This document shows, in pieces, positions 2,645-26,351 of a stretch of 64,000 nucleotides of DNA (within the stretch, counting starts at the first letter, position 1; each line of letters opens with the position of its first letter). The stretch lies in the sequence record NC_042013.1, one strand, 5' to 3'. Made by a program: the position numbers and the translations under genes. The notes under the pieces are model-generated. The model did no database searches. It was not told where the DNA came from and saw only the letters and a program-made list of their open reading frames with translations.

Positions 2645-4513
2645 ATGACTGAAATCAAAAAGAAAACAGACTACCAACATATTCGACTACGAGTCCCTAT
2701 GTATCTTGGTTCACCTGATCCCCATACACAACAAATCATTTCCTATGACAACGGCCAGCCTATTCTTGCAGAGATGACGTGGGTTCCTGCTCTTTACACA
2801 GGATTTCGTGAAATTATTGATAACGCTCTTGACGAGGTTGTCGGTCACGGATTTGGTAATAGAATTGACATCACCTATAATGAAAAAGATTTGATTTTTT
2901 CTGTGAAAGATAATGGTCGTGGTATTCCTATCACTTATGATGAAGAGCATCAGATGTATGCTGCGACAATGGCTCTAACAGAACCAAAAGCAGGCCGTAA
3001 CTTTGAGGAACGCGGTGCGGTGGCTGGAACTAACGGTATCGGCGCGTCAGCGACTAACATTACGGCAGAATATTTTAATTTTGAGATTGTTCGTGATGGG
3101 AAAAAATTCAAACAGCGTTGTACCGAGGGCAACGTAGTTCTTGGTGATTATCTTCAGATTTTTGATCCAGAAATTACCAAATCAGCGTCTTCATCTTATA
3201 CGTACATCGAATATAAACCATCGCGAGAAGTTTACAAACATCGTATTCTTCCAGAACAATTCGTTAAAGATCGATTGTATGAAATTGCTGTTGCAAATCC
3301 AGATATCAAGATTAGTTACAATGGTGAAGTTATTAAGGTAAAGCTTCGTCCAGAACAAAACTTGTTCCCGAACAAGAAGCCTATCATTATTGAACATCAT
3401 AATGAAAATATGAGAGTTAAGTTTTGGCTATTACCTGAATGGTCTAAAGAAAATGAATTTATGACGACTATCGTTAATAACATTAATGCGTTTAACGGTG
3501 GTGTTCATATGGAAACCTTTAGACGTTCTTTCTTGACGAATTTCTTAAATTCACTTACGAAGGAAAGCAAACGTCGCAAGTTGCAGCCTAATAGATCGGA
3601 CGTAACCGAAGGATTGCTGATTTATAACATCACCGTTATGAATGCTCCGAATTTCGATTCTCAGTCAAAGACTCGTCTTATCAATGAAGAGGTTGAAAAG
3701 GAACTGAAGAAGGCATTTGATGATGAGGCTCTTTATAAGAACATCATCAAGAAAAATCCTGAATGGATCGAGGCTATTTTCGAACGTTGTGCACGACGCA
3801 CTATGAAGAAAGATGCATCCGAGATTGAAAAGATTGCAAAGAAGAATAGCCGTCTGAAAATTGCAAAGCTTATGGATGCTACCGGTAAGGACCGTTCTAA
3901 ATGTATCCTTCTTCTTGGCGAGGGTGATTCGGCTATTGCAGGTGCGGCAGCTGTTCGTGATCCAGAAATTCATGGTGGCCTACCATTGCGAGGTAAGGTT
4001 TTAAACGTTACCGGCGAAGACTTGAAAAAGGTCGTCAACAATGCAGAATTGATTAATATTACTACATCATTAGGATTGGTAATCGGTCAAAAAGCTGATC
4101 GTGAAAATATGCGTTATGGTCAAGTTTACATTGCTACCGATAGTGATGAGGACGGTAAGAATATTGCAGCGTTGCTGGTTAATTTTTTCAACACTTTTTG
4201 GCCAGAACTTTTAGAAGATACTGAAAAGCCATTTTTGAATATTTTCCAAACTCCATTTATTATTATGGAAAAAGGAAAGCAACGTCAGTATGTTTATGCA
4301 CATAACTATAGTGAATTTGATCCTAAGGATTATTCTGGTTGGCAAATTATCAGAGCTAAAGGTCTTGGTACACTTGAAGAAGTGGATTGGAAGTATGCAT
4401 TGGATAATCCACTGTTGTTTCCAATTATCAAGGATGAAAATCTAAACGATACCCTTGATCTTATCTTTAATGAAAAACGCGCCGATGATCGTAAAGAATG
4501 GATCGGGATGTAA
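2645..4513 (+). CDS. Type II DNA topoisomerase, ATPase/TOPRIM subunit (T4 gp39+gp60-like)
   Basis: GHKL motifs EIIDNALDE, DNGRGIP, GTNGIG; TOPRIM EGDSA, PLRGKVLN, ATDSDEDG, KGLG. Confidence 0.95.
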   Translation: MTEIKKKTDYQHIRLRVPMYLGSPDPHTQQIISYDNGQPILAEMTWVPALYTGFREIIDNALDEVVGHGFGNRIDITYNEKDLIFSVKDNGRGIPITYDEEHQMYAATMALTEPKAGRNFEERGAVAGTNGIGASATNITAEYFNFEIVRDGKKFKQRCTEGNVVLGDYLQIFDPEITKSASSSYTYIEYKPSREVYKHRILPEQFVKDRLYEIAVANPDIKISYNGEVIKVKLRPEQNLFPNKKPIIIEHHNENMRVKFWLLPEWSKENEFMTTIVNNINAFNGGVHMETFRRSFLTNFLNSLTKESKRRKLQPNRSDVTEGLLIYNITVMNAPNFDSQSKTRLINEEVEKELKKAFDDEALYKNIIKKNPEWIEAIFERCARRTMKKDASEIEKIAKKNSRLKIAKLMDATGKDRSKCILLLGEGDSAIAGAAAVRDPEIHGGLPLRGKVLNVTGEDLKKVVNNAELINITTSLGLVIGQKADRENMRYGQVYIATDSDEDGKNIAALLVNFFNTFWPELLEDTEKPFLNIFQTPFIIMEKGKQRQYVYAHNYSEFDPKDYSGWQIIRAKGLGTLEEVDWKYALDNPLLFPIIKDENLNDTLDLIFNEKRADDRKEWIGM

Positions 4514-4523
4514 GGAAAATAAA

Positions 4524-5885
4524 ATGTCAACAAAACAAAAAACACCAGCAAGCGATTTTATTCGCCAAACATCAAGAGAATATTCTATTTACGTTTGTCA
4601 ACATCGCGCAATTCCGTCCGTTATTGATGGATTTAAAGATGTTCAGAGAAAGCTAACGTGGACCTTGAAAAGCAAAGCTGAAAAAATTAAAACCGTTGCG
4701 CTTGGTTCAGAAATTATTTCAACAGAGCTTTACCTCCACGGTGATGCAAGCTCGAGTGCTGCCGCAGGTTTGATGGCAGCACCATATGTAAACAACATTC
4801 CGTTGTTTACAGGAATAGGCACATTCGGTACACGCGTGTCACCTGTTGACGGTATCGGTGCGCCACGTTACACGTACGTAAAGAAGGGTAAGGCCCTTGA
4901 AAAGCTAATCCTGACGGATTCTGACATCGTTCCTCTTGTCGAGAACCATGATGGTTCACGATTGTTGGCTGCATACTTCCTTCCCCTTATACCAACTGTT
5001 CTGTTAAATGGCAGTTCTGGTATTGCGGTTGGTTGGTCAACAGAAATTTTGCGCCGTAAGTTTAGTGATCTTGTAGATGCGAGTATTGCTGTTCTGGAAG
5101 GTAAAAAGATTAAAAGGCTTGTTCCTCATTATGAATTGTACAATATCGGTGTTAATCACGTTGAAGGTAACACTTGGGAATTTGTAGGGTCAGTTACAGT
5201 TAAAGATGCAAGCACCCTTCACGTGACAGAACTTCCACCGGATTTATCTCTTGAAAAATTCAAGGAACGTTTGAATACCATGGAAGAAACAGGTTCTATC
5301 AACACCTACATTGATAATAGTACCAAGACGATTGATATTACTATTAAAATGCCTCGTGGTGCAGTTAAGGGTTGGAATCAAAATACCGCCATTGATTTTC
5401 TAAAATTAAAGCAAAAGAAAACGGAGCGTATCGTTGTTGTTGACTTCGGTGGAGATACTATTAAGCAATATGATACTGCTGAGGAAGTAATCAAGAAGTT
5501 CGTTGAATGGCGCTTAGCGTGGTACGAAACACGATACGAAAAAATGTTACGTGATGCTACTCATAAACGCAATTATTATCATGCTATCAAAAAATGCTTT
5601 GATGATAAATTTCCAGCAAAACTTACTGGTTTCAAGAACAAAAAAGAAGTATCAGATTCTATTAGATTGATTTGTAAAGACATCCCGTTGGATGACAACC
5701 AGATTGAAAATATCACCGGTTTATCATCATATCGTTGGGCAAAAGATTATTATGAAGATGTCCTTAATAACATTGCTGAATTGGATAGTAAGATCGCAGA
5801 ATACGAATTGATCTTAAGTAGTGAAGAAATTCGTAGAGAAATTTATAAAACCGAATTGATTGAACTTCGTAAAGAAAAATTCTAA
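4524..5885 (+). CDS. Type II DNA topoisomerase, breakage-reunion subunit (T4 gp52-like)
   Basis: RAIPSVIDGFKDVQRK, YLHGDAS, catalytic APRY; start moved to ATG 4524 after AAGGAAA. Confidence 0.93.
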   Translation: MSTKQKTPASDFIRQTSREYSIYVCQHRAIPSVIDGFKDVQRKLTWTLKSKAEKIKTVALGSEIISTELYLHGDASSSAAAGLMAAPYVNNIPLFTGIGTFGTRVSPVDGIGAPRYTYVKKGKALEKLILTDSDIVPLVENHDGSRLLAAYFLPLIPTVLLNGSSGIAVGWSTEILRRKFSDLVDASIAVLEGKKIKRLVPHYELYNIGVNHVEGNTWEFVGSVTVKDASTLHVTELPPDLSLEKFKERLNTMEETGSINTYIDNSTKTIDITIKMPRGAVKGWNQNTAIDFLKLKQKKTERIVVVDFGGDTIKQYDTAEEVIKKFVEWRLAWYETRYEKMLRDATHKRNYYHAIKKCFDDKFPAKLTGFKNKKEVSDSIRLICKDIPLDDNQIENITGLSSYRWAKDYYEDVLNNIAELDSKIAEYELILSSEEIRREIYKTELIELRKEKF

Positions 5886-11001: not shown

Positions 11002-12266
11002 TATACCCTTACTGCCTTTCCGTGAACAATCATATTAACCGCGTCTTTTTCATTGACAATGAACTTGTAGTTATCAAAGACAACCTTACGAACAGTGTCA
11101 ACTTCAAAGTCATTTTCATCTTCAACCGTGATAACGGCCAGTTCGTTGATATTATCAAAAAATTGAAAACCGTCAAGGAGTTCTTCTTTGGAGATAATAA
11201 AGTAGCTATTTTCCCAACGTTCCTTCAACGTGTCCAAAATCTTACCCATATTTACACCGGGCTTCATACCCATTGCAATCAGGTCTTTGCCAGATACCGG
11301 GAATACGTGCGGGATAGTCTTCGAACCGTCAAATTCGAAATGTGGCAGGTTAATACGCTTTACAAACGGGGTAACTGCCTCATTAAGATGTGGGTACTTT
11401 GTAATGAACGCATTAATATGTACCGGATACGAATGACGTACGGTGCCAAAAAATGCAATCATCGACTTTTCGTCGGCACTAATTTTGAAGATTTCAGCAA
11501 AACGATCTGTGTCATTGCAAAAACGTGCAATCTCGAAGAAAGGACCGTTAAGATGATCAAACATATCATCTTGTGGAAATCTAAACAGTTCCTCGTCTTC
11601 AACGCGATTGATGAATTCGAAAAGATCAGAAATCAAATCGTGATCGTGAAAGCGAACCTTCTTGAATTCAGACCAGATGCGTTCCTTGCTAATATTCCGC
11701 ATACCTTCGATTACATCATCCTGAACAATGAAGTTTTTGATATCATCATCAAGATCAGCGCCCATTACAGAAGCAAAACGAAAGTACCGAAAAATTCGAA
11801 GGTAATCTTCGCGAATACGGTCTTCAAAGTTACCAACGAAACGAACAACCTTGTTCTTAAGGTCTTCGCGGCCACCAAAATAGTCATAAAGATTTCCATT
11901 GAAATCAAACGACATTGCGTTGATAGTAAGATCGCGTCTACGAGCATCTTCTTCAAACGAACGAGTAAATTCAACATTCGCATGACGACCATCAGTTTCG
12001 GCGTCAATGCGAAGCGTTGTGATTTCGTATGATTGATCGTCAATGACAAAGGTAACCGTACCGTGTTGAAGACCGGTTGGAATAACCTTAATAGAATGTT
12101 CGTCAGCGATTGCAATCATTTCAGATGGCAGCGCGTCAGTGCAAAGATCGATATCCTTTGGAGTTACACCGCGAAGAACATCGCGAACGCACCCGCCAAC
12201 CAAGCGGATTTCAAAACCCTCATTCTTGAAGATTTCTGCAATGTTTTCAAGTTCTGGCGTCAGCAT
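11001..12266 (-). CDS. cca: CCA-adding tRNA nucleotidyltransferase / poly(A) polymerase family (class II)
   Basis: LVGGCVRD..PKDIDL, EITTLR, RRDLTINAM, REDYLRIFRYFRF. Confidence 0.88.
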   Translation of the reverse strand: MLTPELENIAEIFKNEGFEIRLVGGCVRDVLRGVTPKDIDLCTDALPSEMIAIADEHSIKVIPTGLQHGTVTFVIDDQSYEITTLRIDAETDGRHANVEFTRSFEEDARRRDLTINAMSFDFNGNLYDYFGGREDLKNKVVRFVGNFEDRIREDYLRIFRYFRFASVMGADLDDDIKNFIVQDDVIEGMRNISKERIWSEFKKVRFHDHDLISDLFEFINRVEDEELFRFPQDDMFDHLNGPFFEIARFCNDTDRFAEIFKISADEKSMIAFFGTVRHSYPVHINAFITKYPHLNEAVTPFVKRINLPHFEFDGSKTIPHVFPVSGKDLIAMGMKPGVNMGKILDTLKERWENSYFIISKEELLDGFQFFDNINELAVITVEDENDFEVDTVRKVVFDNYKFIVNEKDAVNMIVHGKAVRV

Positions 12267-12326
12267 ATCGGTCTCCTGTGATTGATATGAAGATGTTTTA
12301 ACACAACTAAAAATAAAGTCAATGGA

Positions 12327-12683
12327 TTATTCGTAATCTACCAAAATAAAATGAATGTTATGACAATTACGGTTATCATTGATAAATCTAAGTATCGTTT
12401 GTTTTACGGTTTCATTACAGCTATACATCTCGTCAATGATAAAAAATATCAAATTACTATTTGGTAAATTTGCAACTGCCGTTGAAAATTCGTTTAATAG
12501 ATGGATATATGCGCTATTTTCATTAAAAGCATATGCTCTTACATTGATGGTTGGAACATCTGGATAAAATGTGCCAACTTGTGTAAGAAAACCATCACCG
12601 GGGCGCTTTACAACAGTGGTATAACCCTCTTTTGAAAGAATATCGTGTTCAAGCTTTGTAAGATTTTCAGAAACACTGGCCAT
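12327..12683 (-). CDS. Hypothetical early protein
   Basis: AGGAG RBS; behind promoter copy 12701-12743. Confidence 0.7.
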   Translation of the reverse strand: MASVSENLTKLEHDILSKEGYTTVVKRPGDGFLTQVGTFYPDVPTINVRAYAFNENSAYIHLLNEFSTAVANLPNSNLIFFIIDEMYSCNETVKQTILRFINDNRNCHNIHFILVDYE

Positions 12684-12700
12684 TTCTTAATCTCCTATAA

Positions 12701-12743
12701 CGTTTAGATAATGCAGTTATATCTCAGTTTAAAACAAAGTCAA
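12701..12743 (-). promoter_or_regulatory. Diverged copy of early promoter
   Basis: TTGACT-N16-TATAAC; shares the AAACGTTATAGGAG leader with the 7308 and 29097 copies. Confidence 0.7.
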
Positions 12744-12766
12744 TAGATTTTTTTGAAACGGTATCG

Positions 12767-12773
12767 ATAAATA
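12767..12773 (+). promoter_or_regulatory. Putative late promoter (ATAAATA)
   Basis: About 33 nt before the start of the CSPG-repeat cluster. Confidence 0.5.
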
Positions 12774-12805
12774 TCAATAAGCGCGATACAATCTGGATTC
12801 TGAAG

Positions 12806-15800
12806 ATGGCAATTACAATTAAATCAAATATCGATCAAGGGGTTAACTTAGGAGCAACCGCGAATATTTCAGGTGCTAACCTTCAGGCGATTTCATCAAA
12901 GGGAAGCCCTAACTCAAGAATTCAATATACTTTAACCTCCCTTCCAAGATATGGTCAACTTCTTCGTGGTAATGTTCCGTTAGCTATAGGCGCGACATTT
13001 ACCCAAGCAGATTTGATTGCGGGTAATATCCGTTATCGTTCAGATTCCAATGTTCTTATTTTGATGGTATATTTCGGGGTTTCTGTTCGTGATTTGGATG
13101 ATCCAAGTTCACCCGCAGTTTCAGTGGAAGTTCCTATTCGTATTTCGATTCCTCCCGTTCCTCCTAATGGTACAACGTCGCCAATGAATGTTGCGCAGAA
13201 TGGTACTGTTAAAGCAACCCAAAACAACATCAATTATGATGACTTAAACACCCCCGGTAAATGGTCACAGATTTTTTTCCAAGTTCTTGTTTTGCCAGAA
13301 TTTGGTATTTTGTACATCAATGGTAAAAAAGCAACCGTTGGGGCGAATTTTACACAAGCAGATGTTAATAATGGGTTGATTTCGTATACTCATATCAAAG
13401 ATAGAAATCCAACTGCTGATAAAGACCAGTTTATTATTCAGGCTCGTGACCCACAGGGCAATATCACTCCTGAATTTGGCGTTGTGGATATTAACATTGG
13501 TTTGTTTGACGCGCCATTGGTATTGGTAAAAAATGGTCCTCTCGTTCTTAATCAGGATGAGAAAAAAACAATTGATAATACACTTCTTTTGGCGTCCGAT
13601 GCGGATGATCCAAACCTAGTAATTACATACAAAATTACAGTACTTCCTAAGAATGGTATTTTGGCTAAAAACAATGTTCCGTTAACGGTAGGTGCTACTT
13701 TTACGCAAACGGATATTGACAACGGTCTTCTTAGTTATGACCATGACGGTGGCATTTCTATTGCAGATTCTTTTAAATTTGACGTTTCTCACTCTAAAGA
13801 AACATTGCTTAATAATACGTTCAATATAATTATTAAGCCAGTTCTAAATTTACCTCCATTAGTTTCCGTTCTTCCTATTCCAGTGGACTATTGTAAGTCA
13901 GTTGTAATTGATAAAAAATATATTACTATATCCGATCCTGAGGGCAAACCTTTAACGGAACTTACTTTCACGATTACAGAATTGCCTCAATTTGGAACTT
14001 TGTTCATTAAAGGTGTTCCAGCAAAAATAGGCGATAAAGTAACCGTGAATGATGTAGTTAATAACGCGGTATTATCCTATACACACGGCTGTGCTAAGCC
14101 AGAGGAAGAAACTGATTTATTTAAATTTACAGTGTCTGATGGTGTAAATGATGTTGCTGCTGTTGGAAATATCATTATTAATTATGTTAAAAATGAACCC
14201 CCATATGTTGTAACAAATATTCCTCAACAAATCGAACGTACCAGCGTAACAACTGTTGATTTTACTGTTTTGAATTTTGACGATAAAGATTCGCCAGCAG
14301 AAGAAGTTCTTTTGATTATTTCTGAATTACCAGAAATAGGAACGCTAACCTATAATGGCTCTGTTGTTACCGTTGGAATGTCATTCAAAAAATCAATATG
14401 GAAAGACGTTAAAATCCTATATACCGTTTCAACGGAGGATTTTGATATTGAGGAAGTATCTTTTTCATTTACATTAACGGATGGAACGAATGATGTTGGG
14501 CCATTTGATCATTTCTTCAGATTCCCACCTCCACCACGTGGCTGCCCTACACTAACGAATGAACCAATATCCATGCGTTATCTTGAAACGAAGCTTATTG
14601 ACAAGGATCATTTGTTTGCGACAGACCCTGACGTAAAGCCCGTTAACTTGATATTCACTGTGACGAAGGTGCCACAATATGGCGACTTTACGTTCTATGG
14701 ATCACCTACAAGTGTTGAATCAAAAATCAGCGTTCGTGATATCATGAACAATGCTATTGCATATAAGCAAACAACCGGAACTCCAGATACTGACGAAATT
14801 CATTTTACATTGTCAAATGGCGTTTGTGAAATAGATTTGATATTCACTATTAATTTTGAACGATCACTATTTTCTGTTATTAATAACCCCCTAACCGTTA
14901 TCGCATGTGGTGAGGGAACTATTAAAGGCGGCGACAATCCGCCATTAAACCCCGCTGACGTTAATTTGTTGTATAGCAATAAGTTGTCTACTGATCCAAA
15001 AACAATCGCGTATACGATCACCACAAGCGTTCGTAGTGGTATTATAACGGTTAATGGTATAGAGACTAATACGTTCACACAAGATGATCTTAATAATGGT
15101 GTTGTTAAATATCAACATGATTGTTCTGATTCATTGACTGATCAATTTGAATTTTCGGTGACCAATGGAACCGAAACATTAAATGCTATTTTTGAAATTA
15201 TTATAACGCCGATTGATAATCCGCCTACATTGGTAAACAATGGAATAACCGTTGGCGAACTTTCTTGTAAAATTATTAATGGCGGCGAAATCTCCGCAAA
15301 TGATGATAATGCGTCGGCGGCAGAACTTGTATTTCAATTGATTACTCTTCCACAACACGGTAACCTCACAAAAAATGGCCAGATATTAAATCCGGCTGAT
15401 ACATTTACATATGAGGACATCCTCAACGGGTTTGTTTCTTATTGTAACACGGTTGAAGATCAGCTTACCGATGTATTTGAAATCACCGTAACGGATGGAG
15501 TAAATGAACCGGTCGGTCCAGAAGAAGTTTTAGTCACTATTATACCTCTACCTGAACCTGAATTAATTAATCGCGTGCTTTCAATGGCTGTGTGTTCTGA
15601 AAGAACTATCACCGGAGGCTTCTTAAGTATTGCCAATTACTCGATTGAAAATGATAAAAAAGATGCAATCTTTACGGTAACAAGATTGCCTGATATTGGT
15701 TTTCTTAAGAAAAACGGAATCCCAATGAACGTCAACGAAACGTTTACTCTTGATGACATTGGAGCAGGAGTTGTCACTTACCAAAACGACACAATGAATG

Positions 15801-16312
15801 ATGAACCGCAGTCATTTGATTTCACGCTTTCGTCACCAGACCTTAGCGCTACAGGAACATTTAATATCGTTTTCAATGCGAGTTTTAATCCACCGTGGGT
15901 ATGTGTAAATGATGGCATGGTTGTTATGGAAAAATCAACAACAAAACTTCCGCAAGATAGTTTGCAGATGTGTGATATCGATCTTGATGCTGACGGTGAT
16001 ATTAATACATATCCTCCAATGTCATCCTATTCTGTTGATAGCGAGATTGTCGGTGATTCGTTACGTTATATTCAATTTTTAAGCGTTGATTCCGGTAGAA
16101 CGTATGCATACAATTTGAATGTTACATCGGGTAGCGTGCATGTTGCGGTAACCGATATTGTAGCCAATAAATTAGTATCAACCGCGTGCGTGACAAGCTC
16201 AAGTACTGGTTCATTCGTTATTCCACAATATGTTTACGAAGTTTCAGTAGATATTCAAATAGGTTGTAATAATTCTACTGAAAATACTTGGAACCTCGTA
16301 TTCACCGGATAA
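12806..16312 (+). CDS. Large CSPG/cadherin-like repeat protein, probable virion surface fibre
   Basis: About nine 110-120-aa repeats with LPxxGxLxxNG and FTQxDxxNGxxxY signatures. Confidence 0.8.
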   Translation: MAITIKSNIDQGVNLGATANISGANLQAISSKGSPNSRIQYTLTSLPRYGQLLRGNVPLAIGATFTQADLIAGNIRYRSDSNVLILMVYFGVSVRDLDDPSSPAVSVEVPIRISIPPVPPNGTTSPMNVAQNGTVKATQNNINYDDLNTPGKWSQIFFQVLVLPEFGILYINGKKATVGANFTQADVNNGLISYTHIKDRNPTADKDQFIIQARDPQGNITPEFGVVDINIGLFDAPLVLVKNGPLVLNQDEKKTIDNTLLLASDADDPNLVITYKITVLPKNGILAKNNVPLTVGATFTQTDIDNGLLSYDHDGGISIADSFKFDVSHSKETLLNNTFNIIIKPVLNLPPLVSVLPIPVDYCKSVVIDKKYITISDPEGKPLTELTFTITELPQFGTLFIKGVPAKIGDKVTVNDVVNNAVLSYTHGCAKPEEETDLFKFTVSDGVNDVAAVGNIIINYVKNEPPYVVTNIPQQIERTSVTTVDFTVLNFDDKDSPAEEVLLIISELPEIGTLTYNGSVVTVGMSFKKSIWKDVKILYTVSTEDFDIEEVSFSFTLTDGTNDVGPFDHFFRFPPPPRGCPTLTNEPISMRYLETKLIDKDHLFATDPDVKPVNLIFTVTKVPQYGDFTFYGSPTSVESKISVRDIMNNAIAYKQTTGTPDTDEIHFTLSNGVCEIDLIFTINFERSLFSVINNPLTVIACGEGTIKGGDNPPLNPADVNLLYSNKLSTDPKTIAYTITTSVRSGIITVNGIETNTFTQDDLNNGVVKYQHDCSDSLTDQFEFSVTNGTETLNAIFEIIITPIDNPPTLVNNGITVGELSCKIINGGEISANDDNASAAELVFQLITLPQHGNLTKNGQILNPADTFTYEDILNGFVSYCNTVEDQLTDVFEITVTDGVNEPVGPEEVLVTIIPLPEPELINRVLSMAVCSERTITGGFLSIANYSIENDKKDAIFTVTRLPDIGFLKKNGIPMNVNETFTLDDIGAGVVTYQNDTMNDEPQSFDFTLSSPDLSATGTFNIVFNASFNPPWVCVNDGMVVMEKSTTKLPQDSLQMCDIDLDADGDINTYPPMSSYSVDSEIVGDSLRYIQFLSVDSGRTYAYNLNVTSGSVHVAVTDIVANKLVSTACVTSSSTGSFVIPQYVYEVSVDIQIGCNNSTENTWNLVFTG

Positions 16313-16317
16313 AAGAT

Positions 16318-17454
16318 ATGTATGAAATTTTACCAGAATATACCCATTTAGTATATGCAAGAATAGTTAAGAGACCAACTAAAGGTTTCTTAACTTTGAA
16401 TAAAACGCGTTTACGTGTAGGTGATTTTTTCACACTTGCCGATATAAACAATGGGAAAATTTATTACACCCATACATCAAACCTTACAGACACAACTGAT
16501 ACTGATAGTTTTGAATTTATATTGTTTGATATTGAGGGTGATATTACTAGAGCGCGTTATTCATCATGCTTTCTTACGGAGTATAATATTACCGTTCCAG
16601 AAAATGGTATTTACACATACGAAATAACAATTAACGGCGCATCAAGACCAACTGCTGTTATCAATGTTTTGAATGCAGAAACAAATTCAAGTATCCAAAT
16701 AACTCCATTGATCATTTCTTCATCCAGCGATGGGTTTAATGCAGACGATATCATTATATCCGCATCTAAGCCAACATCCGGCGCGTTTATAGTAAATGGT
16801 GTTGAAAGTGATGTGTTCACACAACAAGAAATAAACAAAGGAAACGTATATTTTAAAACATATTCGGAGCCAAAGTCAGAACAAATAACATTATCTATTG
16901 TTAATGGTAAAAGTAAAAGTATTACCGAGACACTACAAGTAAATGTAGAAACAAAGTTTGAATTTACTGGCGACAATGTAATATATCAACAAATACTTGC
17001 GGATGTTTACCTGAATATAACAACAAATCGTCCAAATGTGATTTTTGTATTGAAGAATGGTATTACTAAGACTCCTATTGGTGTTGTATATAAAGTAGAT
17101 GATGATCTTATACCATTTACTGAATACAATGAGGTTGGTACAACTAATACCGCTGTTGGTGAGGGTGTGAACAAATTACCACAATACAGGAACTATAAAA
17201 ACATAACGTATTGGGATGGCGGATTGTCATATGGCGTTAGCTTAAATAGTCGTGGTGAGTTGTTATCAAATACACACATACCTGAAATTGATTTAGGTTC
17301 GGATCAATGGGTATTACCAGTGACGCCTCGAGAATACCCATTTGTTGTTGAGGCTATTGATACGGTTACCGGAAAATCAATTGAACGAGAATACAAGATT
17401 ATTACCACTTATACTGGTTTTGGTCCTAATGGCGAAAGTACAACGGTGATATAA
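16318..17454 (+). CDS. CSPG-repeat/Ig-like structural protein
   Basis: FTLADINNGKIYY and FTQQEINKGNVYF repeats; ATG 16318 preferred over TTG 16288. Confidence 0.75.
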   Translation: MYEILPEYTHLVYARIVKRPTKGFLTLNKTRLRVGDFFTLADINNGKIYYTHTSNLTDTTDTDSFEFILFDIEGDITRARYSSCFLTEYNITVPENGIYTYEITINGASRPTAVINVLNAETNSSIQITPLIISSSSDGFNADDIIISASKPTSGAFIVNGVESDVFTQQEINKGNVYFKTYSEPKSEQITLSIVNGKSKSITETLQVNVETKFEFTGDNVIYQQILADVYLNITTNRPNVIFVLKNGITKTPIGVVYKVDDDLIPFTEYNEVGTTNTAVGEGVNKLPQYRNYKNITYWDGGLSYGVSLNSRGELLSNTHIPEIDLGSDQWVLPVTPREYPFVVEAIDTVTGKSIEREYKIITTYTGFGPNGESTTVI

Positions 17455-20120
17455 TGGCACGACATCCTAACGTTATTATTCCAGAATATTCTGACAAAGC
17501 ATATTTTAAAATTACAAAAGTACCACTTTATGGGGATTTATATTTTCGTGGTATGAAAGCTATTGTTGGAACCGTATTCACTCAAGAAGATTTGCTTGAA
17601 GAGAATATGGAATATAAAAACACCAAAACGCCTGCAACAACAAATGGTGCATCGTTTGAGGATACATTTAATTTTGTTGTTCCTGTGTCAGGTTCTGCTA
17701 TTCTATTGCCTAATTTCCCTGCGCATAAAGCATGCTTTCCAGTAACTTGGGGTGGTTCTCCAACGGGAGAATTTGTATATAAAATAAAAGTCCTGTTTAT
17801 TCCCATTCCAAAAGTAGTTGTTAATGCAGGTCTTACTCTGTTCGAAGAACAAACTAAATGTTTATCAACCGAACTTCTGAAATATACTAGTGATTATGGT
17901 GAGCTTCCTCCCGGCGAAACGTTCCCTCCAAATGGTGAAAAATTCCCCATAACGTATACTATTACGAATATTATATCTCATAAGTCGGCAAAGATAACAC
18001 TAAATGATGTGGAATTAAAAAAAGGCGATACTTTCGGTCACGCAGATTTGCCTAATTTGTGTGTAAAAGGCCAATTGGAGGGCGCGGGGAATTTGAGCTT
18101 TTCATTCTCTGTATGTAACAATGTTAATAAATGTATAACTGGCACATTTAATATCACAGTTAAAGCAAGACCTTTTCCTAAAATTTATCGATCTGAAATC
18201 ACAATTAATGAATGTGATTCCAATATTTCTATTACTAAGCAACATCTCGAGGTTCGATCCGAGGGAGAAACTGATGATGATTTTATCAAGTTTGAATATC
18301 TCAGTGAAAAAACTATCGCTCTTGATCCATTGGTTGTCGCTAATCTAAATGAAAGTGTATTTAACGGTACATTTATTGGTAATGGTCTTACTGTTACCAA
18401 TCCATGTCCTATGGAAAACAAAAAGACTACCCAAGTCTTGGTTATGAAAGCGACTAATGGTTATGGCAAGGTAAAGGAATTCTTTTTTACGGTTCGTATT
18501 ATTCTTAAAAAGATTGAATTACCGCCAGCTAATCCAGCGGAAATATTCTATGATACCAATGGCGGTTGTAGCTATAAAATGAACTTTTTTGGTCAATGGA
18601 CCATCAATGGTCTTTGTGGCCTATGGGTAGAGATTTTAACGCGTGATGTAGCTGAATTTATGGAAGATAAACCAGTAGGTCAGGTAGTTGTTGTGCCTAA
18701 TGCGGCAGAAGAACCGATTGCTGTTCTTAAAACGCCAGAAGGATTGGTTACTATTCCATTTAATGCAAATCCTCCATCCGGCGAAACACCTTGGCCAGAA
18801 CCAAAGCCAAGTCCAGATAAACCAAATGGTGAAGCGGCTGCTGGCGATCTATTCGTATCTGAGGATGGAACTAAGTTTATTGCCTCAGGTGAAGGTACGT
18901 ATCATGCGGTTGAGGGAACTTGGCCTGAAGGGCAAGAAGAACCTAATATGGACCCTGTTATATTGACAGGTGACTATTGCGTTGAAACTACCAATCTCGG
19001 TGGGGTTCCGAGCAATGTAGGTTGTGCGATTGTTAATGGTAACTATTTGGTTAAAAATGAGGCAGGCGATTGGGAACCGGGTGAACCTGAACGTCTAGAT
19101 ATTCAATACTCAACTCCGTATTTTGGATGGATCGGGGCTAATGAATTCTATGTTCGATATAACCAATCTGTAAGCATATTCTTCTATTCGTTGCGTTTTT
19201 ATACTCGTTTCGATATTGTAGGTGGTGGCGAACAGCTTTATGGAAACTTCCATCGTGATAGAACCTATATTCCTTGGTCAAATACTATTGGTCCCGGTCC
19301 TATTTTACATAAGCTTGATATTAGCTTACCGCTCAACACGTATAAGGTTCATAACATTACGAACCCTTATGCATTTGGTCCATATCGAAAAATACCGGGA
19401 ATTGATGATTTTACACGTCAAGATTTTACCTATATTAAAATGCAAGACTCTAGACTGTTTGCGTTTGGATCAAGCTCGCGCCCATTTAAATCTATCTATC
19501 AACCACCGCGTATTGATGGATATGATATCTCACCAACTTGGACACAAGCTGATGATGTAAGGACTACTATTCCATATAATAAGAAATATCCAATTATGGA
19601 TTATGTGAATTTGACGTCTGATCAAGAGGTTGTTCCTTTTGGTGGACCGGCGTATGGACCAAATCTTGATCCTCATCTACATTTTCTTGCTTGGAAAGTT
19701 GCATATAAGCTCGTTAGAAAATATAATCCAACAACGAAAAAGTATGATCAGGTTTTTGAAAGACCACAAGGTTTTGCCAAGGGTCAGCTTAAAATTATGC
19801 ATAATGATAATTTTACTAAAGCAGCTAATTTCAAACGTGCGAACGGTGGTGAATTTGAAGCTAACCTACCGAAAGCTCCTGTCACATATACGTTCAATGT
19901 AAGAGCATATGATATAATGACCGGATTAACGAAGTATAGAACTTACAAAATCCATTATAATGCAACCGGTCTTTCACCGGCAGGAAATTCTAGCGAGACA
20001 ACAGATAATCCGACTGAAGGTTTGGGTAATGGTTTCTTGCCACCTGCAAGACAAACGGCAACGTGTCAGTTTATCAACAACGTTGCCCAATCGTGTAAGT
20101 ATACCGGAGGTGCAGGCTAA
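17454..20120 (+). CDS. Large structural protein with N-terminal CSPG-like repeats
   Basis: VFTQEDLLEENMEY repeat; TAATG coupling; C-terminal strand block similar to the 388-aa neighbour. Confidence 0.75.
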   Translation: MARHPNVIIPEYSDKAYFKITKVPLYGDLYFRGMKAIVGTVFTQEDLLEENMEYKNTKTPATTNGASFEDTFNFVVPVSGSAILLPNFPAHKACFPVTWGGSPTGEFVYKIKVLFIPIPKVVVNAGLTLFEEQTKCLSTELLKYTSDYGELPPGETFPPNGEKFPITYTITNIISHKSAKITLNDVELKKGDTFGHADLPNLCVKGQLEGAGNLSFSFSVCNNVNKCITGTFNITVKARPFPKIYRSEITINECDSNISITKQHLEVRSEGETDDDFIKFEYLSEKTIALDPLVVANLNESVFNGTFIGNGLTVTNPCPMENKKTTQVLVMKATNGYGKVKEFFFTVRIILKKIELPPANPAEIFYDTNGGCSYKMNFFGQWTINGLCGLWVEILTRDVAEFMEDKPVGQVVVVPNAAEEPIAVLKTPEGLVTIPFNANPPSGETPWPEPKPSPDKPNGEAAAGDLFVSEDGTKFIASGEGTYHAVEGTWPEGQEEPNMDPVILTGDYCVETTNLGGVPSNVGCAIVNGNYLVKNEAGDWEPGEPERLDIQYSTPYFGWIGANEFYVRYNQSVSIFFYSLRFYTRFDIVGGGEQLYGNFHRDRTYIPWSNTIGPGPILHKLDISLPLNTYKVHNITNPYAFGPYRKIPGIDDFTRQDFTYIKMQDSRLFAFGSSSRPFKSIYQPPRIDGYDISPTWTQADDVRTTIPYNKKYPIMDYVNLTSDQEVVPFGGPAYGPNLDPHLHFLAWKVAYKLVRKYNPTTKKYDQVFERPQGFAKGQLKIMHNDNFTKAANFKRANGGEFEANLPKAPVTYTFNVRAYDIMTGLTKYRTYKIHYNATGLSPAGNSSETTDNPTEGLGNGFLPPARQTATCQFINNVAQSCKYTGGAG

Positions 20121-20569
20121 ATTTTAGCCTCTAACTCTTTTTGATACATAGCAAAGAAGTCAGATTTTAACATCCTATTAACGAAATCTGACTTCTTTAA
20201 TAAACTCTCTAAATCGATAATCTCGTATGCCATATTAGCTATAATGGTACTTTTTTCTAAAACCAATATCAAATCGTTTGTGGAAATTTCAACAGTTCCA
20301 TTTTTTAACTTAAGATCATGATTAGGCCCTTTATATCGAAACACGGGATATTCAATTTCCTCTATTTCGACTTCCATTAAATCAGCAATCTGGTCAGCAT
20401 TCATATACCCATCTTTAAGATTCTTTAATGCGTTCCTGATCCATAATGGCTGGCCACATTTGTCTATTTCTTCATAAGATAGATTTTTTACATTATCATA
20501 CAATGCTTGCTGTGCTGGCTTTTTCTTCATAGCAATGAAGAATTCAACCGGGTTTTTATTGGTTCGCAT
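20117..20569 (-). CDS. Hypothetical protein
   Basis: 150-aa ORF overlapping the upstream gene end. Confidence 0.65.
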   Translation of the reverse strand: MRTNKNPVEFFIAMKKKPAQQALYDNVKNLSYEEIDKCGQPLWIRNALKNLKDGYMNADQIADLMEVEIEEIEYPVFRYKGPNHDLKLKNGTVEISTNDLILVLEKSTIIANMAYEIIDLESLLKKSDFVNRMLKSDFFAMYQKELEAKI

Positions 20570-21059
20570 TTGCTAAAACCCTAGCAAGAAGATTAGTCTC
20601 CATATCCTCATTCAAAATCATAATTTTTGATGTTCGGCGGATAGTTGATTGATTACCGACTGTTGGGTGAATTGTACTAACATCAATTCCTTGTTCGGTA
20701 ATTTTATTTGCAACGCCTACCCAAAGATCATTGTTTTTCCAAAAAATTAGTTTATCATTAACTTTAATTTCTTGGTCAAGAGAATCTTTATAATATGCAC
20801 CATCTTGTCTTGTAGGAGCTACGAGCTTTGTTTCTGTTTCATCACTGATAATTAGGTTTTTACCAGATTCAGAAAAATGACGTTGACCTTCAATAGCTAG
20901 TCGGTATAGGTGCCTTGAAAAATGAATGCGTGATACTGATATTACTTTTGCAATAGACCCTGCTTTTTTTCCATCTAATATTTGAACAAAAATGCTTCTA
21001 CCAGCGTTGATAGCATTACTAATATCTGACGCCTCAATATGATGATGTAGTGTTTTCAT
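20556..21059 (-). CDS. Hypothetical protein
   Basis: 167-aa ORF. Confidence 0.7.
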   Translation of the reverse strand: MKTLHHHIEASDISNAINAGRSIFVQILDGKKAGSIAKVISVSRIHFSRHLYRLAIEGQRHFSESGKNLIISDETETKLVAPTRQDGAYYKDSLDQEIKVNDKLIFWKNNDLWVGVANKITEQGIDVSTIHPTVGNQSTIRRTSKIMILNEDMETNLLARVLANANQ

Positions 21060-21148
21060 TTATATGCCCTGCATTTCTTATGATCTAAAGATAGCAGGGT
21101 TGTTTTGGCGTATGCAATATTATTTTAAGTTCCGTATATAGAAGATGT

Positions 21149-21511
21149 TTATGCGTTCCAATAATCAATGCCAGCTTGTTTCCAATACGCCTCGTCCTCA
21201 TTTTCGCAAAACGTGCGTATCTTAACAAGCTCTCGCTTCCAGATTCCTTTTATATCTTTTGGCACTTCATCATACGATATCTCAACAATAGGGCGATTCA
21301 TAGATCGAGTTCCATCTGTAAGGACAGCGGCAAGACCTACTCTGTTATGACCTTTTTGTTTTTTAGCCATTATTGAACGGGATTGTGCATAACCATCTTT
21401 CCCCTCTCCTCTAAAAAATTGCGTATAACGACTATCGACTACCAGATATTCAGACCATTCTCCATTTTCATGAAAGAACCATTTATCGAAATTTGGAACA
21501 GGAATACTCAT
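21149..21511 (-). CDS. Hypothetical protein
   Basis: GAGG RBS; 120 aa. Confidence 0.75.
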   Translation of the reverse strand: MSIPVPNFDKWFFHENGEWSEYLVVDSRYTQFFRGEGKDGYAQSRSIMAKKQKGHNRVGLAAVLTDGTRSMNRPIVEISYDEVPKDIKGIWKRELVKIRTFCENEDEAYWKQAGIDYWNA

Positions 21512-21535: not shown

Positions 21536-21787
21536 TTATTTTGCGTTTTTAGCTTCTGTATAAGTCATTTCGTCAATTAACGTAATTTCGGAATCGGTTT
21601 CAATCCAAGCACGAGCACCGCACGATAATTGATTTCCATTATAGATTAGTTTGGAAGGTCCATTAATATGAACTTCGCGGGCATATTTAGTTTTGCCTTT
21701 AATTTTAATTGTGTATACTGGCCTATTACCGCCGTCTTTTGCATTCATGCCAATATGACTGCGGTTTACGTGAATGATTGTTGTCAT
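21536..21787 (-). CDS. Hypothetical phage protein
   Basis: GAGG RBS; ATGA-type overlap. Confidence 0.75.
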   Translation of the reverse strand: MTTIIHVNRSHIGMNAKDGGNRPVYTIKIKGKTKYAREVHINGPSKLIYNGNQLSCGARAWIETDSEITLIDEMTYTEAKNAK

Positions 21788-22080
21788 TGTGACCTCAATA
21801 AAGCAGATAAGATTAATGAATCCATATGATTGTCAAATTCAAATCCAATTACATTTTGTAAAAATTCACGACTCTCATTTAAGAATATCAATTCGTCATC
21901 TGTTAATTTTTCAAACTGTTGGTATAACTTTTTACGAACCTCATACCGGAGATATATGATTCTTGGATCATTTGTATAAACCGGAAAGACATCTTTTATA
22001 TTAGTGTAATGAATTTGAAATGTTGATAATGGTTCAAAAATCAACATTTCATAAGCTTCGTATTCGGTAATTAATGACAT
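21784..22080 (-). CDS. Hypothetical protein
   Basis: 98-aa ORF tightly packed between neighbours. Confidence 0.6.
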   Translation of the reverse strand: MSLITEYEAYEMLIFEPLSTFQIHYTNIKDVFPVYTNDPRIIYLRYEVRKKLYQQFEKLTDDELIFLNESREFLQNVIGFEFDNHMDSLILSALLRSQ

Positions 22081-26323: not shown

Positions 26324-26351
26324 TATTTATCTTTTACCAAAGTAATAAATA
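26324..26351. promoter_or_regulatory. Back-to-back ATAAATA late-type promoters
   Basis: Minus copy 26324-26330 and plus copy 26345-26351 in a 94-nt divergent gap. Confidence 0.55.

Follow-up and report, generated by a model that had tools for sequence, protein, structure and literature searches.

What does a bacteriophage make of three adjacent genes built from the CSPG repeat, a sequence module seen mainly as an element of metazoan matrices? The question is raised by gp20, gp21 and gp22, which lie side by side on the + strand in the window analysed here, a stretch of 64,000 nucleotides (nt) from sequence record NC_042013.1. Positions 12000-21000 match Agrobacterium phage Atu_ph07 (MF403008) at 100% identity, and the window represents the first 64 kb of its genome. 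Atu_ph07 is a jumbo myovirus with a genome of 490 kb. It is among the largest cultured phages, and its "hairy" virion is unexplained, with no hair yet tied to a gene. An earlier, sequence-only reading of the window had proposed that the three genes encode CSPG/cadherin-like repeat proteins of a phage, and the open reading frames (ORFs) are indeed found where that reading had placed them, all on the + strand. The genes are as follows, with the letters A, B and C also denoting the respective protein families.

12806-16312, + strand: gp20 (protein A), 1168 amino acids (aa), 127 kDa, pI 4.35, labelled "putative internalin" in GenBank
16318-17454, + strand: gp21 (protein B), 378 aa from the ATG at 16318 in a frame open from 16288, hypothetical in GenBank
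17454-20120, + strand: gp22 (protein C), 888 aa, hypothetical in GenBank

The repeats of all three proteins belong to the Cadherin_3/CSPG family. Pfam PF16184 (Cadherin_3, the CSPG repeat) matches nine stretches of gp20 (E 2.5e-109, 359 bits), two of gp21 (E 1.8e-17, 63.7 bits) and one of gp22 (E 8.9e-6, 26.1 bits). The last of these is marginal against the curated gathering cut-off of 25.5 bits, and orthologues score similarly. The Pfam scan suggested by the sequence-only reading therefore places all three proteins above the gathering score, gp22 marginally. Within the 490-kb genome, Pfam confines Cadherin_3 to gp20-gp22. A repeat profile made from gp20 itself finds nine full repeats there (residues 5-1022), and one truncated plus one full repeat in each of gp21 and gp22, in agreement with the earlier estimate of about nine, two, and one or two repeats. 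The two signatures named in that reading are also present: each gp20 repeat has one LPxxGxL-like motif (nine copies, spaced by ~115 aa), and the strict form FT..D...G...Y is found in six copies in the same protein.

The relatives of these proteins are the ones expected from the family. Behind the phage orthologues, the best matches of gp20 in its length class are vertebrate FREM1, which aligns to 80-84% of the protein at 22-23% identity (E 8.8e-64), and bacterial cadherin-like proteins. Evidence on the fold comes from the AlphaFold2 model of gp22 alone, which was built from a 12-sequence alignment and has a predicted local distance difference test (pLDDT) score of ~75-89 over residues 10-350 and ~80-89 over residues 130-351; the model is moderate or poor past residue ~350, where no fold claim is made, and that of gp21 is poor (pLDDT 46, from a 3-sequence alignment). 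Residues 130-351 were compared with 48,161 PDB representatives without a pre-filter. The best match is repeat 1 of human CSPG4 (7ML7_B; Z 9.3, root-mean-square deviation 3.2 Å over 109 aligned residues) and the second best is a fragment of the same repeat (7N8X_B, Z 9.0), against a generic cadherin and immunoglobulin (Ig) background of Z <= 8. With Foldseek, the top matches of the model are cadherin ectodomains. Residues 241-352 of the model form one more beta-sandwich, the third, which is diverged. The fold match to CSPG4, together with FREM1 and bacterial cadherin-like proteins as nearest non-phage kin, bears out the earlier assignment to a family typical of NG2, FRAS1 and FREM proteins and of bacterial adhesins. 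Sequence searches of gp20, gp21 and gp22 against the PDB were all empty. The classical cadherin family PF00028 gave no match at E up to 1 in the three proteins. The DxNDN and DRE motifs did not turn up in their canonical form, and what the repeats conserve are acidic loops between strands and linkers of the form (N/D)xPP.

The layout of the domains within each protein is given below.

12818-15871, + strand: nine tandem Cadherin_3 repeats of gp20 (aa 5-1022), from Pfam and our own profile
15890-16309, + strand: gp20 tail (aa 1029-1168)
16351-16635, + strand: opening repeat of gp21, truncated to profile positions ~35-98 (strands A and B missing), with a long loop bearing the conserved C84 and then a closing strand
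16669-16941, + strand: full Cadherin_3 repeat of gp21 (aa 118-208), from Pfam and our own profile
16942-17451, + strand: C-terminal region of gp21 (aa 209-378), no family match
17493-17795, + strand: opening repeat of gp22 (aa 14-114), truncated like the gp21 N-terminus and homologous to it
17814-18509, + strand: gp22 aa 121-352, two beta-sandwich domains of cadherin/CSPG-like type, from profile and model
18510-20117, + strand: C-terminal ~535 aa of gp22, beta-rich and restricted to a small phage family

This arrangement supports the elongated, multi-domain architecture that had been proposed. The first ~35 aa of the gp20 tail align to profile positions 4-31, that is, to strands A and B and the acidic loop, as of a tenth repeat. 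Their motif, NPPWVC...LQMCD[IV]DL, is better conserved over five lineages than any other stretch of the tail. The remaining ~105 aa are a beta-rich domain whose cysteines are conserved. No Pfam, PDB or ESM Atlas family could be assigned to the tail, and the Atlas gave low, non-specific scores only, both for it and for the gp22 C-terminus. Both gp21 and gp22 enter the repeat at profile position ~31-35, about 10 residues past the start codon, and lack strands A and B; beyond this point lies a long loop that holds a conserved cysteine, then a closing strand, then a full repeat. The two proteins are also related at the other end, with the last ~45 aa of gp21 sharing 44% identity with gp22 aa 805-847 in what looks by eye like an Ig/He_PIG-like strand pair.

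Several repeats had been said to carry paired cysteines near their ends, and the pairs that were named, C363/C429, C701/C773 and C821/C880, all exist in gp20. Across the gp20 family the pairs C580/C674 and C821/C880 are invariant, as are the further cysteines C930, C1033, C1056 and C1128. The other pairs vary as units: C363 and C429 are both present in two lineages and both absent in a third, C701/C773 is found as a pair in Atu_ph07 only, and Sinorhizobium phage Phosso has a pair of its own, C255/C319, at matching repeat positions. In gp22, 11 cysteines are invariant over the whole protein among three distant homologues, in addition to lineage-specific pairs. Since cysteine pairs are jointly gained and lost across homologues, the comparison supports intradomain disulfides in the gp20 repeats and, with them, the disulfide stabilisation that had been suggested. 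Repeat 1 of CSPG4 is disulfide-stabilised (PMC8213806).

The three genes also travel together. The module is kept in the order A-B-C in Phosso (L002 in our numbering) and in the metagenomic contigs L003, L005, L006 and L008. In Phosso the A, B and C proteins measure 1187, 389 and 1307 aa and share 31-35% identity with those of Atu_ph07; over the loci the identity is 31-41%, except for L008, a strain at 80% nt identity. Orthologues of protein A span 1160-1218 aa, and nine repeats and a tail were found in all five that were examined. Every C-family protein opens with the truncated repeat, and so does B. Among 50,697 phage records, Phosso is the only one besides Atu_ph07 to carry the module. A profile search of 1.84 billion representatives returned 13 members of the gp22 C-terminal family, and a scan of IMG/VR with two short peptide patterns, which amounts to a weak negative, gave no relative. 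Measured against L008, the ratio of nonsynonymous to synonymous substitution rates (dN/dS) is 0.057 for gp20, 0.067 for gp21 and 0.033 for gp22, without indels, compared with 0.072 for the adjoining CCA-adding enzyme and 0.036 for the virion protein gp31; with dS at ~1.2-1.4, all of these values are approximate. By this comparison, gp20, gp21 and gp22 are real genes under strong purifying selection.

Closer relatives of the phage are found in environmental data. Strains ~98.6% identical over 5.9 kb (positions 12700-18600), without indels, occur in three metagenomes, namely a biofilm, honey and one further sample, and smaller shares were recovered from marine-sediment and tobacco metagenomes. 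The lineage of Atu_ph07 is therefore environmentally widespread. In L004, a Logan contig from a 92%-identical phage, positions 3694-5646 encode a 650-aa protein that joins gp22 residues 1-430 to residues ~200-419 of ClpX (gp2); the join is either an assembly chimera or the product of a rearranged or defective genome.

The genes form a compact + strand unit, with the flanking genes on either side on the - strand. The gp20 stop codon, TAA, occupies 16310-16312 and the gp21 ATG lies 5 nt downstream, at 16318, while the gp21 stop and the gp22 start overlap by 1 nt (TAATG). In GenBank, gp21 starts at a TTG at 16396, which loses 26 residues and interrupts the first repeat. A start at ATG 16318 agrees with the gene calls (378-389 aa) and the N-termini in all relatives, where B begins right behind the A stop, and from this comparison the annotation is corrected to ATG 16318. 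A frameshift or read-through fusion of the three genes was considered and rejected: because the A/B frame offset varies over five loci (2, 0, 2, 1, 1), and with clean stops, the products are taken to be separate polypeptides. On inspection of the N-terminal sequences, none of gp20, gp21 and gp22 resembles a signal peptide.

A possible guide to the timing of expression lies just ahead of the unit.

12767-12773, + strand: ATAAATA, resembling a T4 late promoter and placed 32 nt ahead of the gp20 ATG

The core of the T4 late promoter is TATAAATA, and the element matches it. In Phosso, L005 and L006, whose spacers are otherwise unalignable, the heptamer recurs 30-40 nt ahead of A, and L003 has CTAAATA, such that ATAAATA precedes A in four of five loci. 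Within the window, 16 of 22 copies are sense-oriented with a start codon 20-75 nt downstream. Thirteen of these 16 precede genes whose products were detected in the virion by mass spectrometry (MS), the background proportion being 32 of 82 genes (Fisher p 2e-4; with gp20-22 left out, 3e-4). Late transcription of gp20-gp22 is likely, judging from this promoter element, and ATAAATA may be a genome-wide marker of late genes. One RNA library held two short contigs, too little to show transcription. The heptamer often occurs as back-to-back divergent pairs, as at 26324/26345, 36277/36302 and 57918/57937.

From these elements we propose that gp20-gp22 may constitute an operon, expressed late, whose products are CSPG-repeat fibres that are thin, monomeric and stabilised by disulfides, held by the virion loosely or at low copy number and adhering to polysaccharide-rich surfaces, a proposal whose chances of being right and of being wrong we judge to be evenly balanced. 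The genes would be expressed late as one translationally coupled operon of extracellular-type fibre proteins. In such a fibre, gp20 would form the shaft, its nine repeats and tail extending over ~40-45 nm at ~4.5 nm per domain, as in cadherins. The shorter paralogues gp21 and gp22 share the truncated N-terminal repeat and the C-terminal motif around middles that vary between lineages, and in relatives these middles take up extra modules, one of them CBM60-like at a sub-threshold score. Because no signal peptide is seen, the proteins would fold in the cytoplasm, with oxidation of the intradomain cysteine pairs to follow once the cell has lysed. The assembled product would then most likely serve as a low-copy or loosely attached appendage of the virion, possibly as part of the "hairy whiskers" seen by electron microscopy, and could mediate reversible adhesion to polysaccharide-rich surfaces, whether host envelope, exopolysaccharide or biofilm.

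The sequence-only reading had also called the products virion fibres and had named virion MS as a check, for which published data exist. Attai et al. 2018 (PMC6102473, Table S5) recovered gp20 from virions as 1 peptide (1.11% coverage) in the top gel slice, and gp21 as 3 peptides (10.5% coverage) in a slice fitting ~40 kDa. The gp20 and gp21 proteins are made, and peptides of both are established in the virion preparation; a seat on the virion is putative. Support for virion association from these peptides is weak, and that from the late-promoter-like element is indirect. Several results weigh against the appendage that we propose. The single gp20 peptide falls below the criteria stated by the authors, and gp22 is not in their virion protein list. 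Their preparation was purified by polyethylene glycol (PEG) only, and a RecA-like protein, single-stranded DNA-binding protein, ribonucleotide reductase and terminase appear in it at similar levels, compared with 25-65% coverage for true structural proteins (PMC6102473). The genes gp20-gp22 lie outside the three virion gene clusters set by the same authors, who observed the capsid-associated "hairy whiskers" by transmission electron microscopy and did not assign them to genes (PMC6102473). None of the three proteins matches PHROGs at E up to 0.01, and no homology to a known fibre or decoration protein was found for them. Sliding dN/dS against L008 shows no 100-codon segment that is raised, hence no diversifying selection as at receptor-binding tips, and no ligand-binding domain scores above a curated threshold.

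Much of this would also be explained if the proteins were not part of the virion. As late products that lysis releases in soluble or matrix-binding form, they might form a coat on debris or on exopolysaccharide, or have a part in assembly, and the trace in virions would be carry-over. Peptide counts as low as those of evident contaminants, the missing gp22, the PEG-only preparation, the position of the genes and the lack of homology to known structural families all suit such a role. It fits less well with the recovery of gp20 and gp21 in gel slices that agree with their full-length sizes, and with a promoter element common to genuine virion genes, and the rod architecture and constant nine-repeat length suit an appendage better than a soluble factor. 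We regard a purely non-virion role as possible but rather unlikely.

A second alternative places the module at the centre of infection, as the primary receptor-binding tail-fibre complex, with gp20 as the shaft, gp21 and gp22 as the tips, and host range set by them. A common N-terminal module in gp21 and gp22 is typical of interchangeable fibre tips, and their middle regions are variable, with insertions in relatives. Against this, dN/dS is low throughout with no variable tip, the module is conserved across phages of different host genera to the same degree as neighbouring genes, and neither trimeric fibre signatures nor PHROG fibre matches were found. The tail-fibre candidates put forward by Attai and colleagues are other proteins, gp31, gp288, gp327 and gp472, with much higher MS coverage (PMC6102473). 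A receptor-binding complex is, in our judgement, improbable. An internalin-like role for gp20, as an effector directed at eukaryotic (plant) cells, is scarcely credible, being suggested by the RAST/GenBank label and the metazoan distribution of CSPG repeats only, in a lytic phage and for a protein without a leucine-rich repeat (LRR) or signal peptide whose sole Pfam domain is Cadherin_3. The label "putative internalin" was itself rejected, as Pfam finds no LRR family in gp20 and the N-terminus is not signal-like.

If a late CSPG-repeat fibre is assembled, how its parts join is suggested by a complementary break. The start of the gp20 tail covers profile positions ~4-31, and the repeat that opens gp21 and gp22 covers ~31-91. 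All lineages that were compared, at 31-41% identity, preserve this break. Strands A and B of the gp20 tail might accordingly combine in trans with the truncated repeat of gp21 or gp22 to complete one CSPG repeat, docking the tips on the shaft, an idea suggested by profile alignment that we consider doubtful. Such complementation is not required, because the truncated domain of gp22 is modelled confidently as a monomer. The truncated gp21 and gp22 repeats nonetheless offer a simple system for the study of assembly by fragment complementation. Residues 248-278 of gp22 were considered as a second "donor" fragment and rejected, the same region in relatives being a recognisable full repeat.

Among known systems, the closest by family are animal CSPG4/NG2, FRAS1 and FREM1-3, which have the same repeat, with the fold of the only CSPG repeat solved (7ML7/7N8X), around ten tandem copies and an intradomain disulfide, the last of these being predicted in gp20-gp22. 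The phage proteins differ in lacking a signal peptide and laminin-G, Calx-beta and transmembrane parts, in being made in the cytoplasm, and in sharing just 22-23% identity with the animal proteins. Bacterial fibrillar adhesins, such as RTX adhesins and SraP, resemble the module in their stalk of repeated beta-sandwiches with non-repeat ends and in their acidic pI, and both SraP and an RTX adhesin repeat are among the structural matches of the gp22 model. However, the phage proteins have no secretion signal and no cell-wall or outer-membrane anchor, and the function would be spread over three genes. Classical cadherin ectodomains (PF00028) share the tandem beta-sandwich geometry, and the acidic loops and (N/D)xPP linkers of the phage repeats recall their Ca2+ sites, but the module lacks the PF00028 match and the DxNDN and DRE motifs in canonical form.

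Phages themselves provide a fourth comparison. T4 Hoc is a phage surface protein of Ig-like domains. Like Hoc, the "Cadherin domain-containing" proteins of Rhizobium phages and BACON/Ig proteins, the module would consist of monomeric strings of beta-sandwiches for which a weak adhesion to glycans is presumed. Proteins of this Ig/cadherin-like kind are the best viral structural neighbours in BFVD, behind the phage's own paralogues. They belong to another repeat family and show no sequence homology to the module (no PHROG), which is much longer at ten domains, is distributed over three genes, and is known from genes and trace MS. Ig/cadherin-like phage proteins are already well known; what is described here is the CSPG repeat, in a conserved three-gene module of Atu_ph07-like jumbo phages. 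Full-text literature searching found no discussion of the CSPG repeat in phages. On this evidence, a small clade of jumbo phages of Alphaproteobacteria makes use of an element seen mainly in animal matrices, and gp20-gp22 become concrete candidate genes for the appendages of Atu_ph07.

What such fibres would bind is hinted at by the relatives of gp22. Six of 12 gp22 homologues carry an insertion of 127-221 aa at the position of gp22 aa ~443-460, and in the relatives P0015, P0018 and P0019 a CBM60 match is found at 22.9-26.8 bits, below the cut-off of 28.2. The gp22 protein of Atu_ph07 is without the CBM60-like insertion, and a profile of the insertion-bearing homologues found nothing in the PDB. 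Some C homologues, including that of Phosso, have an insertion of ~250 aa within the second repeat, with no family match. Conserved ends around a variable, insertion-tolerant middle fit a putative exposed binding region in the gp22 family. The sequence-only reading had included eukaryotic tissue among the surfaces to which the fibres might adhere, for which no evidence was found, the sub-threshold CBM60-like insertion being the sole hint of a ligand. If polysaccharide matrices are bound, the module could affect the persistence of this biocontrol-candidate phage in biofilms or the rhizosphere.

The surroundings of the module differ between lineages. In Phosso-like relatives, genes for TelA, a PF10112 protein, an SPFH/flotillin protein and a YqiJ-like protein lie behind the module on the opposite strand, as a membrane-stress-type cluster (Phosso 17663-21210, L005 11939-13704 and L006 13215-17499). 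The genes of Atu_ph07 at this position encode unnamed hypothetical proteins. Two intact ORFs on the - strand, at 20117-20569 (150 aa) and 21784-22080 (98 aa), have no annotation in MF403008 and are called as genes in L008, to which their aa identities are 0.77 and 0.72, roughly equal to the nt identity.

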